64,000 bases of DNA from contig CM074521.1 of NCBI GenBank assembly GCA_037379345.1, positions 18,686,704-18,750,703 on the forward strand, in the 5' to 3' direction. The translations under genes and the position numbers were made by a program. This DNA comes from Perna viridis. Its lineage: Eukaryota. Below, piece after piece: positions 34,101 to 55,100 of this stretch. Each line of letters opens with the position of its first letter. Position 1 is the stretch's first letter. The notes under the pieces are model-generated. The model worked only from the letters and a program-made list of their open reading frames with translations. It was not told where the DNA came from and did not search any database.

Positions 34101-37100
34101 AACTGCCTGAACATGCACCAGTGCTACATTGGACAGATATAAATATTTTCAAATAGGTATTTCCCTACTGTTGGCTCATGAGATACTATTTTTAACACAA
34201 TTTTCAACTGTCCTTTTGGGAACCAGATCGAGTAAATGACAAATTCATGTCATTATTTTTCAGTTATCTTTAGTATTGGTCCCTGAAGAATTAACTGATA
34301 GCATAAATGATATCTTCAAATATTGCTGACATGCTACTACAAAATGTAGTGACACCGGTGCAGGGTAGTGACCAAATTACCAACATATAGTTTACACTAA
34401 AGTTTGATGTACAAAAACAAATGATAAATTACTTTTTAGGTCATTTTGAGACAAAGTTAATGAGAAGTAAAGAAATTTTCAAGGCAACAATTGTTACCAG
34501 CATTTGAACTTTCACGCTTGAGTGGTCAGAGACCAACATTTACTCCAAGTGCGGTGCCTGATTAGTGTAATTGGTGAATTAGGAAATTGTTTACTCAAAA
34601 TGTTGACACCTGTTGAGAGTTGTAATTAGGTTGGGGTAATTAAATTGTCAATTTTGCCACTTGAACCAATGTTGGGCTTACAGCTCTTAATGTTTTTTTG
34701 TAATTTCAAAGATTTCAGATGACGAAATGAGATTCAATTATTTCCGTCATTCTGGAAAGTCCTTCATCATCGGCGAAAATGACGAGCGCTATAAAAATCA
34801 CTGTTGGCCTTTTTCAGTCATATCATAGAGATTCATATTTCAGTTATGTAGTTAAGTAGCAGTCTTTAAAAAAAAGGTGATTATGCTTGTCAAAAACCTA
34901 ACAAATTCACTATTATTTCTTGTTCAGAAACAGCTATAGACCACATAACCAGTCTTAGTTTTTCATAGGGGTGTTGCACTTTTAAGATAAAATTTATATA
35001 GATTGTACATGAAATTCTCCTTACCTGAGAACCAGAGTCTCCTATCCCTAATTATTCCACCTACATGAGAAAATTTCCTTACCCAAGAACCAGATTCTCA
35101 TTCCCCTCATTTTTTCATCAGTATGATAAATTTTCCTTACCTGAGAACCAGATTCTCATTCCGCTCATTTTTTCGTCTGTGTGACAAATTCTCCTTATAT
35201 GAGAAACAGATTTTCCTACCCTTCATTCTTTCATCTGCATGACATAGTTTCCTTACCAGAGAACCAGATTCTCCTACCCTTTATTCTTCCACCTGTGTGA
35301 CAAAATCTCCTTACCTAAGAACCAGATTCTCCTACCCCTTATTCTTCCATCTGTGTGACAAATTCTCCTTACCTGAGAACCATAGTCTCCTACTCCTTAT
35401 TCTTCCACCTGTGTGACAAATTCTCCTTACCTGAGAACCAGATTCTCCTACTCCTCTTTCTTCCTCTGCATCTTGTTCTGTGGTTGCTAAAACTTTCTGT
35501 AACAACTGAACCTGCTCATCTTTGGTGGAATATCCTAGATTTTCCTAAAGGAAGAAAGTAAAAGGTTTGAGTTACTTTGTTAAACTTAAGAGTGCACCGG
35601 AAGTCACCCAAAAGATTCATAAGGCCTGACTATCAATTCCAGTAAACATATCATTAAATGAACAACTTTGCCTCAGTAAAGTCAATGGTGTTTAAAGACT
35701 CTATCCAATATCTATCCCTTCTTATTTCAATACATATATTTCATGTTTTGAAACTTTCCATCACGTAGCAGTGCATAAAATCTGAACTCCTGAACAAATT
35801 CAGCCTGTTTTCTTTTAAAAAATAATTTCCATATCAAATCCTCCTTTTACTAACCGGTTACTTACTACCATTTCCTTCAAGTTTTACATGTATATTTAAA
35901 TATTGTAATGAGACTTTGATATAATATTCTTATTACTAGTAGATATTAAGTAGCAGTCTTTGTAAAAATCTGACAAGACGTGACTCATGCATGCCAAAAA
36001 CCCACTTAATCCGCTTTTATTTCTTATTCAGCAACAATTACAGAAAGCACAAGCAGTCTTAGTTGGTCGTTCCACAAACTCCAAAGGCAGATCCAGAGGT
36101 GATGCAGTGGGTTAGCATCCCCCTGTTTTTATTGGAAAATTTGTTATTTTCATGTGTAAAATTGACACAAAATGGCAAATAATGTCCTAGAACCCCCATT
36201 TTTATGAGAAAACCAGGCAGGCACCCCTCCTTTTCAAAATGTCAGGATCCACCCCTGCTTTCCACTATTACCTAAAAATTATCGGTTTTGTAATTTTGTA
36301 ATTACCATTCATTAATCATGTATAGTTTTGTTCTTAGATAAAATCCATTATTTCATACAATAAAATGACATATTTATGTGTTTGTCAATTTCGGTAAAAC
36401 AAAATAAATTATTTGGTGTGGTTTTTTTTGCCATGATACCAATTTACATATTAATAATTATAGATTAGATTTTTTTTTAAATGAGTTCTGTCACTGTCGC
36501 CTTTTGATTGGTCTTTATTCTGTCATCTTTTATGAGAAAAATATCTATAATGACAACATATCTAATGCTTTGACAAATGATGAATAAATGTAATTTAATT
36601 TACACGAAATAATAAATGATACCTAACCAAAACAGGATACAAAGAATGAATATTTCATATTATAATAATGCCTTGCAATTTTTTGGTTTGGTTTGGGATG
36701 CAGTTATATAGAAAACTAGTTATTGTATTATAAAACATGAATGTCTTTTTCCACAGTTTAAAATCTAGAAAATAACTCATCTGATTAGTTTTTAATTATG
36801 TTTCAAACTACAGTGGCACCTGACTGAATCAAAACCTGAATAAAAAGAGAACATGTCCTTTTATATCAGGTTAAATGTATTTTGAACCTGGGTTTACCGA
36901 ATACCATTCTCGATTGAACCATCTCTACAGTTTAAATCCAAATTGGTTTGAATGGTTTTACAGTGTATTGCAAGGGCATGATATCAATTTAAAACAAAGC
37001 CATTAACCTCTTATTCGGTCTGTAATTGTAATTTTTTTTAAAATCTCCTGATTTTCACAATAGATTGATTAAATTGCAATGTTATGTCCAATCCAATTGT

Positions 37101-52100: not shown

Positions 52101-55100
52101 AATAAAATGAATTTGTATGTGTTACCATGCTAGGTATACCCCCACTTATACAAGAGGTCGTTGCGCTCAATTTAAGCCACACACAATATTTGAAATCAAT
52201 CTGTCTAGCGACAGGCAACATTTTTGTGACAACATGTTTTTCATCATTCCATAAAGTGAAAAATGAAAATTAGCAAAGTCCTGCAAAAGAAAAAGTTAAT
52301 ATGAGACAGCAAGTAAAATGCATACAATGTAAGTTCCATCTACATAAAATCACACACTAAATTTGAAATCAATCCATCCAATTAGAACAGAAATTATTAT
52401 GAAGAAATTCAGAAAATTTGCAATAATTTCTTAGAGTATAATCTACCTTTTTTGCATTGTTTCTATGTGTTCAGCTTTGACCTCAAATGACACAGTCTTC
52501 ATATCTTCTGTTTCATCATCTTCTTCTCTGTCCATTTTGTCATAGTAATCAAATATATCAGAGGGCACTGTGGGCTGTTCAGCACTGCCTTCTGTCTGTC
52601 CATCTGTAGATGTACTTGGCTGATCTTGATTCCCATTTGCTGGTTTATTGAGCTTGTAAAAATAATCAGTGAAATGTTACTGAAAATATGTACAACCCTG
52701 CTGGAGAAGATCAAAGAAATCTTTTAAATTATGTATCGTATTTTGCCAAAATTTGTAAGTTATTTGACCTTGAGGTTAAAGGTCAAGGTCAAAAGTCTAC
52801 CACTCTGGCATGCAACAATCTACCCTGAGAGGATACACCAACATACCAAATATTAGAAGTCTAAGTCATAAGACAAAAAAATTATGGTCTGGACAAAGTT
52901 TGTATGAAAAACGTTCAGAAGAAGAAAAGTCCTTACAGGGGGTGATTTTGGGTGCAGATGAGCAAAAAACAAAGATATGCTACATATTTCTATTTTTGAT
53001 ATGTTTCAGTGGAGAGCACCTACTACACATCCATGCATACATGTAATTAATATCTTCTTGCTCTTGTTAGCAAAACGGGTCTGAATATAGCCTATTTTCG
53101 TATATTTCAAATTGTCAAAAATTAAGAATTTTGGTTGCTATGGTAACCAGATCTAAACCAATCTGATTGCTTTGTACTTTATTGTAAATTGTTTTTCATA
53201 AGACATACTTCATTAATATAATTATGTAGTTTGACAAATTTCCACCATTAGATACAAAAAAATACATTCAAATTGTGATGTTTTTGTGTTTAGGCCCAAA
53301 ATTGGTGGTTGCTAAGGAATGGTTGTTGCTATGGTTACGGTGAAAACATTTTTCATTTTTCTATATTAATTCTTGTTTTTCCATTAAATCCTACATATTG
53401 CAAGTCAATTTGGTTCAAATGCCTGACATTGATAAATCATCCATAGGTGGACTGCTACTTAACATTTGAGCTATCTGGAGAACAGATATATTAGACACCT
53501 AACTTTGATCTACATGTAAAGCAGATTTATTTGGGACTTGACCTTTGAGCTACGTGAAATGTAGATATATTTGACACCTGATCTCTGACCTACCTGTAAA
53601 GCTGATTTATTTGAGACTTGACCCTCCACAATGTCTTCCCCTCCCTCATCAGCAGTGACCCTACGCCTGCATTCCTGTATCACTGGATCTTTTAACAACT
53701 GCTGTATAACTTCCTGGAAAATAATTTATTTTTATGCGAAGTTTTTAATTTTGAAAGACAATTTTGAAAGTTCAAAAATAATGTAAAGAGATTTTAAGGA
53801 ATTCCATATGATTTTGAAAGAGGCAACTAGCTGTATTTTGAAGTAAAAAGATTATGCAACACCTGAAACACTGGGAAAATAAATAATCAAGTAGGACAAA
53901 ATTTTAAACACTCACCGGATGTTGACTTTCAACAAAATACTTGTTGTGTTTGAGGACCAGCTTCACCTTGCCATAACTCAATGTACATAACTGTTTAGAG
54001 AACAAAAACATAATTATCTTAAGAATTTAGGACAAGCTATTTCATGTTCATTATAATAAGATGCAACATATATGTACACATATATATCTAATACAAAAAT
54101 TGTCCATGAAATGCTAGTCTAGTTCAAAATAGTGTAGTCAAATACATGGTTTTTGCAATAATAAAATGAAACATCACAATACTATAGCTGTGATTATTTT
54201 CATCAAGTTTTTATTTTCACTTGTATCATGATCAGATATGTGATGAGGCAACGGAACGGGTAGGAAATGCGAGGCTCCGCCGAGCTATTTCCCCCGTTCC
54301 AAGCCGAATACACATATCTTCAATAATTTTCGACAATGTACCTATATTGTTTTTATCCTGTTATATCAATAAAATTTTAAAATGCATATCCCCTGAGGAG
54401 CCCTGATCATTAAACCCGAAGAAAAAAATTAATACGCAAGGCGCATGACTCAGTAAACATTGAAATTCAATCCGCACCATATAATCCGTCAAAGCTGTTT
54501 GAAGAAAATAAGCAATCTATCAAAATTTATTTAATTCCAAGAGACAAATAGTAAAATGAACAATAAAAACAAATATTTTGAATGTTGTAAAGTCGATTTT
54601 AAGAACTTTAAAGTTTTGAATTTTGCGAGGAAGGTGGAAGCTGACTTGTTTCTGTTTGGTATATGGCAGTAGAGTTCAGGGGTGAAATTTGTGCACTAGT
54701 TTCTTCAGAATTTGAAATATTTGTTTGAGATTTTTGAAGAAGAGGAGGCAGTTGTATGGGCAGATCTATAATGTAGTGTTCCTCTGATTCATTATCTTGG
54801 GGTTTAGGCAGTAATAAATCCAAGACCATAACAGTTTCCTGGCCATTTGTCTCTTCAAGAGTTTTATCATATTGTAATGCTTCAATTTCTTTAAGTGGGG
54901 ACCAGTTTATGTTAAATTGTGACGGACACTCTGGCTCCGAGTCCGACATGACTGAAATGACAGGGGAAGTTGTCTGCAAACTGATAATGAATCAAATCTG
55001 AATGAGATTTGGGATTTGCCATATATATGACGGTGAAAAAAAAAAAAAAAACAAACAAAATCATTATTTGGTTTACATAACATCTTTTATTTCATTCGGT

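Follow-up and report, generated by a model that had tools for sequence, protein, structure and literature searches.

Why should five introns of a single gene each begin with a tandem array built from the last bases of the preceding exon and its 5' splice site? This question is raised by the DNA-repair gene XPB/ERCC3 of the mussel Perna viridis, which lies in the 64,000-nucleotide stretch of DNA analysed here (the window). A preliminary description of this stretch attributed the arrays to a process aimed at donors, or to selection for multiple U1 binding sites, and considered the pattern to be undescribed in this lineage.

To place the arrays relative to the gene, a profile search of the 723-Mb genome was conducted with TIGR00603. 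This search yielded 14 exon matches (E-values down to 5e-39), all on the minus strand within the window, and no exon matches elsewhere in the genome, which indicates that XPB/ERCC3 is single-copy. These matches, together with tblastn searches using full-length XPB proteins and the exon frames, locate exons 3 through 21 at positions 30991–58093 (minus strand, as are all features below). The exons were mapped individually, with all frames open and phases consistent, and each was checked singly rather than as part of a joined spliced protein. Our intron numbers presuppose two further upstream exons, which lie outside this map. The coding part of exon 21 (30991–31116) begins at the intron 20 acceptor and terminates with HPLFKKFRK and a stop codon. 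Elsewhere in the window, a run of N occupies positions 4419–4618, and neighbouring ORFs offer nothing useful for a comparison of neighbouring genes.

Tandem Repeats Finder reports all five donor-side arrays (introns 7, 9, 18, 19 and 20) at the places given in the preliminary description. In every case the first unit comprises the true exon end and 5' splice site, and the array then continues into the intron. Exon 7 (53594–53713), which was mapped by exon-by-exon comparison, ends at 53594 with the donor CAG/GTAGGT (the slash marks the exon end). Its array (53503–53623; 40 bp x 3.0, 74% matches) begins 30 nt inside the exon and is composed of two alternating 40-bp subunits (an 80-bp pattern). 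Exon 9 (51186–51257), mapped in the same manner, ends at 51186 with CAA/GTAAGT, and its array (51049–51187; 28 bp x 5.0, 98% matches) includes only 2 exonic bases per unit. Exon 18 (41050–41167), for which mapping is accompanied by an RNA depth of ~10, ends at 41050 with AAG/GTAGGC; its array (40808–41070; 43 bp x 6.2, 77% matches) begins 21 nt inside the exon. Exon 19 (38758–38906), supported by mapping and by the end of a spliced contig from run X1, ends at 38758 with CAG/GTATGT and carries the longest series of copies (38413–38789; 34 bp x 11.1, 88% matches), beginning 32 nt inside the exon. Finally, exon 20 (35431–35544), supported by mapping and by RNA reads crossing the donor, ends at 35431 with CAG/GTAAGG, and its array (35012–35468; 58 bp x 7.9, 82% matches) begins 38 nt inside the exon. 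The extra copies at introns 9, 18, 19 and 20 number 4, 5, 10 and 7, as originally counted, but intron 7 carries 2 rather than about 3.

Each extra copy carries a decoy donor. Among the 28 decoys, 24 retain GT, 3 have GC and 1 has AT, such that GT or GC is kept in 27 of 28, and 25 score at least 6.4 bits with a simple donor matrix. At intron 9 every decoy reads GTAAGT, and at intron 18 all decoys have GT. Of the ten decoys of intron 19, 7 have GT and 3 have GC, and three of the ten outscore the real donor. The two decoys of intron 7 have decayed to scores of 3.6 and 3.0 compared with 11.5 for the real donor. The decoys of intron 20 include 6 with GT and 1 with AT, and the 9-mer of the real donor is repeated exactly in four of them.

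The units of the five arrays are mutually unrelated, as had been proposed, and the arrays thus represent five separate events. Judging from the identity between copies, which ranges from 74% to 98%, the arrays differ in age, and the array of intron 9, whose copies are 98% alike, is the youngest of the five. The reported decay with distance from the exon was also confirmed: along the array of intron 20, copies drop from 0.91 to 0.71 in their identity with the first unit, and along that of intron 19 from 0.94 to 0.59. All five periods are of the form 3n+1, and we considered whether this reflects selection for frame-shifting decoys. The shared period class appears to be a coincidence, since the periods of 25 further arrays, each containing three exact CAGGTAAG words, fall 7/9/9 into the possible classes.

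Mis-assembly is common in tandem repeats, and arrays 19 and 20, whose copy numbers come from the assembly, are interrupted in the short-read contigs of other runs. These facts might suggest that the arrays are assembly artefacts, or pieces of a dispersed repeat that lie beside exons by chance. Several observations largely refute this explanation, which we regard as barely conceivable. Array 18 is reproduced base for base by a single contig from DNA run X3, and is spanned without difference by Logan contig L069, which possibly derives from the same animal. The X3 depth over arrays 18 through 20 is approximately at the unique level, internal repeats aside. Furthermore, the repeat units contain the conserved coding sequence of XPB itself. 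A dispersed repeat or transposon-borne satellite was likewise rejected as the source, given that array 20 has itself as its sole genomic match, DNA depth is at the unique level, and an Rfam search of the window returned zero matches.

The position of the arrays within the gene departs strongly from chance, in agreement with the preliminary description. Searches with 30-nt junction probes detect copies (23–29 of 30 positions matching) downstream of exactly 5 of the 18 mapped donors and upstream of none of the 18 acceptors; none of 200 shuffled junction probes reached this level. For a single array, a start within the final 40 nt of any of the 18 exons has a probability of 0.027, which for five of five arrays gives ~1e-8 by our arithmetic. 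Under the looser requirement that each of the five arrays merely overlap some donor, P is still 7.5e-5 in 200,000 random placements. Introns comprise 24.9 kb of the 27.1 kb of XPB, yet all five larger minisatellites lie on donors, corresponding to an enrichment of ~75-fold over intron interiors (5 arrays in ~0.8 kb of donor windows versus 2 small ones in ~24 kb). Array-bearing donors are also stronger than the others (Mann-Whitney p = 0.010), and array-bearing introns are longer (p = 0.018).

One explanation for such a pattern is that the arrays are selected multi-U1 platforms, which would aid exon definition or guard against premature cleavage and polyadenylation in long AT-rich introns. The greater length of array-bearing introns is consistent with this proposal, as is the finding that most decoys score as usable. 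Moreover, divergence is lower in the donor 9-mer (29/248, or 11.7%) than in the remainder of the unit (162/905, or 17.9%; p = 0.02), although this test counts as independent copies that are related by descent, and array 19 runs opposite to the trend. The lower divergence could hint at bias or selection. However, distal copies decay, both decoys of intron 7 are nearly dead, and the 13 other XPB introns, some of which are 2 kb and more, are free of arrays.

Comparison with relatives also bears on this proposal. In vent-mussel contigs L067 and L068, in which exon 19 is 85% identical, the start of intron 19 is unique sequence and the array is absent. Contig L070 contains exons 19 through 21 and has no arrays at introns 19 and 20. 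This coverage amounts to two relatives for intron 19 and one for intron 20, and public contigs that include exon 14 end short of every array. Because these relatives carry none of the checked arrays, the arrays of introns 19 and 20 appear to be young and lineage-specific, whereas a selected platform might be expected to persist.

RNA data reveal which donors are used. For introns 18 through 20, donor use was deduced by combining binned depth with a mismatch signature and the ends of contigs. In the stranded runs X6 and X7, exons 18 through 20 are covered at a depth of 9–17, and depth in the array bodies is 0 to 0.06 (bins 35200–35398, 38384–38582 and 40772–40970). Where RNA reads continue past 35431, the base at position 35428 is the third letter of exon 21 in 9/11 and 14/14 cases; such reads therefore represent the exon 20–21 junction formed from the first donor. 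One spliced X1 contig stops at 38757/38758, which corresponds to the first donor of exon 19, and at intron 18 there are no RNA reads beyond the first decoy. Thus, the first donor is used at introns 19 and 20, and by binned depth the decoys of introns 18 through 20 are silent, save perhaps for low-level use of the first one or two.

Run X1 also presents a different picture, in that contigs inside the arrays have depths of 36–51 versus 6–9 for exon contigs. An array depth above exon depth is unexpected for a silent by-product of splicing. This over-representation could be taken to favour a U1 platform, and it hints that intron starts rich in decoys may persist in certain tissues as stable RNA bound by U1. 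Nevertheless, the decoys of introns 18 through 20 show no use in RNA past the first one or two, the checked arrays are missing from two relatives, and the human and amphioxus examples of such arrays have no known function. We consequently did not sustain the earlier suggestion of a selected platform, and consider it highly improbable.

A second explanation is that a donor-specific process, such as U1 binding, R-loops or RNA-templated repair at 5' splice sites, causes donors alone to be hit. The presence of arrays at five donors and zero acceptors in XPB, and their occurrence at the strongest donors, would be in keeping with this mechanism. However, were donors and acceptors equally prone to arrays, a 5:0 split within a single gene would have P ~0.06, and the arrays differ so much in age that they did not arise in one RNA-mediated event.

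A control sample was informative with regard to which sites are affected. This sample comprised 60 exons of the myosin and dynein genes of this genome (64 loci), with exons in the flanks identified by eye. No donor arrays were observed in 60 control cases (upper 95% limit about 5%). In contrast, control locus L051 carries one clear acceptor-anchored array (32 x 4), and three more control arrays (39 x 4 in L051, and one each in L040 and L023) end at an acceptor or within 10 nt of one, and are classed as probable or adjacent. In total, at least 5 of 30 control arrays lie at or adjoin identified exon boundaries. These findings suggest that the target is exon boundaries in general rather than donors alone. 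A process that acts specifically on 5' splice sites or through U1 is thus unsupported, and the donor-only reading fails genome-wide. We regard donor specificity as very unlikely. Donors with arrays are nonetheless more frequent in XPB (5/18) than in the controls (0/60), with a hypergeometric P of ~4e-4 by our arithmetic for a gene that was picked as extreme. In the acceptor-side control arrays the decoy AGs are mostly or all mutated, whereas the XPB donor decoys almost always keep GT or GC, an asymmetry that fits tolerance.

We propose that the XPB arrays are tolerated exon-boundary minisatellites of the type termed 'mirages', and consider this the probable explanation. A segment of 28–58 bp that runs from the exon end across the 5' splice site would have been duplicated in tandem on five separate occasions. 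Amplification by slippage or unequal exchange would then yield an intron that opens with 2 to 10 decoy donors. The spliceosome would select the first, most upstream donor, and the decoys would be removed with the intron. The gene presumably tolerates the arrays because the first donor alone joins the full exon. Such arrays would be young, restricted to this lineage and, in all likelihood, neutral or close to it, where both the duplication mechanism and neutrality are inferred. The hallmarks of exon-boundary minisatellites are evident: the unit spans the boundary, the end unit is functional, the splice signal is reiterated, and the arrays of introns 19 and 20 are lineage-specific. At these same two introns, normal mRNA is produced from the most upstream donor.

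Neutral duplication by itself does not explain why the arrays are placed at boundaries or why five cluster in one gene. We also considered a mutational process that raises the rate of tandem duplication at exon boundaries, with selection deciding which products survive. This would add a cause to tolerated minisatellites rather than replace them, and we hold it to be possible, although short of probable. Putative candidate mechanisms would be polymerase stalling at exon or nucleosome edges with template switching, or recombinational repair that anneals solely in the conserved exons of a very polymorphic genome. The strong donor enrichment over intron interiors in XPB and the boundary-associated control arrays both accord with such a process, as does the involvement of both boundary types, which is also seen in amphioxus (PMC3087553). 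Arrays 19 and 20 are least diverged nearest the exon, but this gradient can also arise if selection holds the first unit and array edges exchange less. Whole-genome pattern counts disagree: three CAGGTAAG words at 28–58 bp spacing occur 274 times versus 69 for the reversed word, but a GGTAWGT pattern occurs 2997 versus 2377 times, with a few long satellites contributing most of these; both counts are of matches rather than arrays. The weight of the control arrays is also tempered by exons having been called by eye rather than from annotation.

A more specific version of a boundary process holds that exon edges are true tandem-duplication hot spots in this mussel, as in amphioxus, with a cause in slipped repair and a side that is chosen gene by gene. 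Mussel and amphioxus are both highly polymorphic animals. In the proposed scheme, recombinational repair between divergent haplotypes finds homology solely in exons and slips at the edge of this homology. Whether donors or acceptors are hit would be set for each gene by a directional factor, such as the direction of replication. This feature would explain why XPB has five donor arrays and a myosin gene has two acceptor arrays at consecutive exons. We consider the scheme unlikely.

As a single case, tolerated boundary minisatellites in XPB are ordinary, in that another gene is added to those known to carry them. However, XPB is essential, single-copy and constitutively spliced, and it presents 28 natural decoy donors, several of which match the real site exactly or surpass it in strength. 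The gene could therefore serve as a test bed for how the spliceosome chooses the first among equal 5' splice sites, as has been studied with human F7. Together with the other boundary arrays of this genome, XPB suggests a density well above that of any described animal, amphioxus perhaps excepted. Both the boundary preference and the clustering within genes are measurable genome-wide.

Contrary to the view that the pattern is undescribed, arrays of this kind are known from amphioxus and from several human genes (PMC3087553, PMC3902484, PMC1557585), and only their density in a bivalve seems to be undescribed within the literature searched. The amphioxus mirages are minisatellites that span exon-intron boundaries in Adh3, troponin C, the globins BflGb6 and BflGb9, and PGBD5 (PMC3087553, PMC3902484, citing Canestro et al. 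2002). They affect both boundary types and leave mRNA splicing undisturbed (PMC3087553, PMC3902484). Mirages and XPB arrays alike are composed of tandem units that carry an exon edge and a splice signal. Many mirage copies retain AG or GT, and the XPB decoys likewise keep the donor signal. Unit sizes are also similar, at some tens of bp up to roughly 160 bp in mirages and 28–58 bp in XPB, and the terminal units of mirages are excluded from homogenisation. Mirages affect several unrelated genes. XPB differs in combining five arrays in a single gene, all on the donor side, and in a bivalve mollusc. The Adh3 mirage is moreover defined by length instability.

In a related model, discussed for mirages, introns are gained when a segment containing AGGT is duplicated in tandem (PMC3087553). 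Tandem duplication yields extra splice signals beside an exon in both situations, but XPB gains no intron or exon, and its copies are donor-only with none seen used in RNA. The human genes IFI6 (6-16), CBS, LMNB2 and PDGF each carry 10–25 repeats in which the first monomer spans the exon-intron boundary and the donor is reiterated (PMC1557585), an arrangement shared with XPB. IFI6 and CBS use the first two pseudo-sites alongside the real donor, whereas the array bodies of XPB introns 18 through 20 are without reads, although the first decoy may see some use.

A close parallel to a single XPB array is found in intron 7 (IVS7) of human F7, where a VNTR is made of 37-bp units, the first of which includes the last 4 bp of exon 7, and where only the most upstream of the identical donors is used (PMC1557585). 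F7 has one array per gene, with a proven population polymorphism of 5–9 repeats, and four of the five XPB arrays contain 21–38 exonic bases rather than 4. In both genes, a real donor is followed by several pseudo-donors, which are identical in F7 and mostly near-identical in XPB. The array of XPB intron 9, with 2 exonic bases in a 28-bp unit, nearly matches the F7 design.

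The minus-strand gene is identified as XPB/ERCC3 by 14 exon matches to the rad25 model TIGR00603, which all fall within the window, with no match elsewhere in the whole genome (723 Mb, 46 contigs). Searches by tblastn with full-length XPB proteins, which were retrieved via exon 14, returned the same exons. The boundaries of exons 3-21 were fixed individually, each exon is open in the expected phase, and the terminal exon (31116-30991) has the conserved HPLFKKFRK tail at its end. Intron numbers from the preliminary description, which presume two exons upstream of mapped exons 3-21, were kept because those two exons are unmapped.

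That description placed a minisatellite at the start of introns 20, 19, 18, 9 and 7, and Tandem Repeats Finder recovers five arrays in the same places (periods of 58, 34, 43, 28 and 40 bp, respectively). When read on the minus strand, each array starts with coding sequence and every unit includes a GT donor. The last exon base is 53594 for array 7 (30 exonic bases in the array), 51186 for array 9 (2 bases), 41050 for array 18 (21 bases), 38758 for array 19 (32 bases) and 35431 for array 20 (38 bases). Extra copies of the donor ('decoys') number 4, 5, 10 and 7 in introns 9, 18, 19 and 20, as first counted, but 2 rather than about 3 in intron 7, where two 40-bp subunits alternate and both decoys are nearly dead. 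The 28 decoys begin with GT (24/28), GC (3/28) or AT (1/28), and 25 of them score at least 6.4 bits with a simple donor matrix. Three decoys outscore the real donor in intron 19, and four in intron 20 carry a 9-mer identical to that of the real donor. Identity to the first unit drops with distance in arrays 19 and 20, where the most degenerate copies had been said to lie farthest from the exon; array 18 exhibits no clear drop. The exon part and intron start of the 58-bp unit (35421-35468) have a common 13-14-nt word, ~23 nt apart, and the intron 9 unit contains a stretch similar to exon 9; these likenesses suggest older nested duplications beneath the present arrays. The 3n+1 periods of all five arrays were considered as meaningful and rejected as coincidence.

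To assess whether the arrays might be assembly artefacts, they were compared with DNA run X3, in which depth over the arrays is near the unique level and one contig traverses array 18 without any difference. Contig L069 (Logan), from another run that may represent the same animal, matches exon 18 and array 18 base for base. The sole genome match of array 20 is itself. These findings largely refute an artefact.

Placement was evaluated with probes of 30 nt across each exon-intron junction (18 donors, 18 acceptors), with the next 400 nt of donors searched. Copies matching at 23-29 of 30 positions follow exactly 5 of the 18 donors, those of the five arrays, a level attained by none of 200 shuffles. 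No copies lie upstream of any of the 18 XPB acceptors, in agreement with the initial observation. When five arrays of the same lengths were placed randomly in the 27.1-kb gene, all overlapped a donor in 7.5e-5 of trials; under a stricter criterion, that the array start in the last 40 nt of the exon, the chance is about 1e-8 by our own arithmetic. The only other XPB repeats with a period >20 found by Tandem Repeats Finder are two small, two-copy ones. Array-bearing donors are stronger (p = 0.010) and array-bearing introns longer (p = 0.018), and decoy 9-mers are less diverged than the remainder of the units (p = 0.02, although copies are not independent).

A donor-directed process had been proposed for the five arrays. 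However, the 5:0 donor:acceptor split in XPB alone is not significant, and control genes do not bear the proposal out. Among 60 exon-centred loci (145 kb merged) of dynein and myosin genes from the same genome, selected by protein homology only, 0/60 matched exons carry a donor array, and several arrays lie on the acceptor side. For example, locus L051 (contig C11, ~1.903 Mb; gene on the minus strand, plus-strand coordinates) has a 32 bp x 4 array (1710-1841) before a myosin exon; each of the four copies combines the end of the preceding intron with the first 16 bases of that exon, and 2/3 decoy AGs are mutated. The next exon upstream in this gene follows a 39 bp x 4 array (L051:2427-2581) that resembles part of that exon, so that two consecutive myosin-head exons each have an acceptor-side array before them. 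On contig C4, a 41 bp x 10 array (L040:2278-2693, ~19.82 Mb) and a 35 bp x 26 array (L023/L016, ~43.43 Mb), both long and very homogeneous (98%), terminate no more than 10 nt from the acceptor of a myosin and a dynein exon, respectively; likeness of their units to the junction is weak, with the AG lost. The exons downstream of the L051 and L040 arrays are Myosin_head matches at the expected positions. Given these acceptor-side arrays, the pattern is one of exon boundaries generally. Decoy AGs in the control arrays are mostly or all mutated, whereas the XPB donor decoys are mostly intact. Such a contrast is in keeping with how splicing works: decoy acceptors upstream of the real one would be used and have to be disabled, whereas decoy donors downstream of the real one are ignored.

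RNA evidence on donor use covers introns 18-20. In two stranded RNA runs, depth is 9-17 over exons 18, 19 and 20 and 0 to 0.06 in array-only bins, a binned measure that is compatible with low use of the first decoy. At 35428, reads that extend beyond the exon 20 donor show exon 21's third letter rather than the intron letter in 9/11 and 14/14 cases; therefore, the first donor of exon 20 is joined to exon 21. For exon 19, a spliced contig of run X1 terminates at the first donor. The other 2/11 reads in one run have the intron letter at 35428, which comes from either decoy use or RNA that is still unspliced. Splicing from the first decoy of intron 20, the last intron (region 35335-35431), would lengthen the transcript by 58 nt, cause a frameshift and give a different C-terminal tail, and nonsense-mediated decay would probably not follow.

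Run X1 (Logan contigs that include spliced XPB ones, taken by guess as RNA) has contigs inside array 20 (35200-35310, depth 51), array 19 (38588-38718, depth 36) and array 18 (40829-41062, depth 48), whereas its exon contigs are at depth 6-9 and the adjacent unique intron is at 0. Pieces of introns 19 and 18 (35797-36393, 37389-37587, 38185-38383 and 39976-40572) at 80- to 2400-fold the unique depth in X3, and transcribed on both strands, are high-copy transposon fragments; the X1/X3 ratio of the array contigs is 20-400 times theirs. The two raw-read RNA runs give no array signal at these array positions. The excess may be peculiar to the X1 library, or it may reflect array RNA that is stable in a single tissue or type of library.

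Elsewhere in the window, a 31-bp x 54 array with 86% matches (26239-27914) is situated 3 kb past the XPB stop codon. Two GTAATG words (minus strand) and two acceptor-like words (plus strand) occur in its unit; no adjoining exon was found. A 122-aa open frame with a PAN domain (21530-21898, minus strand, E = 8e-9) probably represents an exon from another, neighbouring gene, and 4419-4618 is a 200-N run.

Retention of the arrays at donors, also proposed, is not supported by orthologous XPB introns. Contigs of hydrothermal-vent metagenomes, presumably host mussel DNA, share 85% identity across exon 19 and have a unique intron 19 start with no array. In a more distant relative, whose exons 19-21 lie inside 2.2 kb, neither exon 19 nor exon 20 is followed by an array. 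Copies are least alike in intron 7 (74% identity) and most alike in intron 9 (98%), and therefore the five arrays arose at separate times and differ in age.

No bivalve description of exon-boundary minisatellites was found in the literature searched. The XPB observation is true, striking and of a known kind, and the arrays are most likely a tolerated by-product. Amphioxus 'mirages' are tandem repeats across exon-intron boundaries of both types that leave splicing undisturbed (PMC3087553, PMC3902484). Human F7 intron 7 has a 37-bp VNTR with the exon end in its first unit, where the most upstream of identical donors alone is used, and further human cases are IFI6, CBS, LMNB2 and PDGF (PMC1557585).
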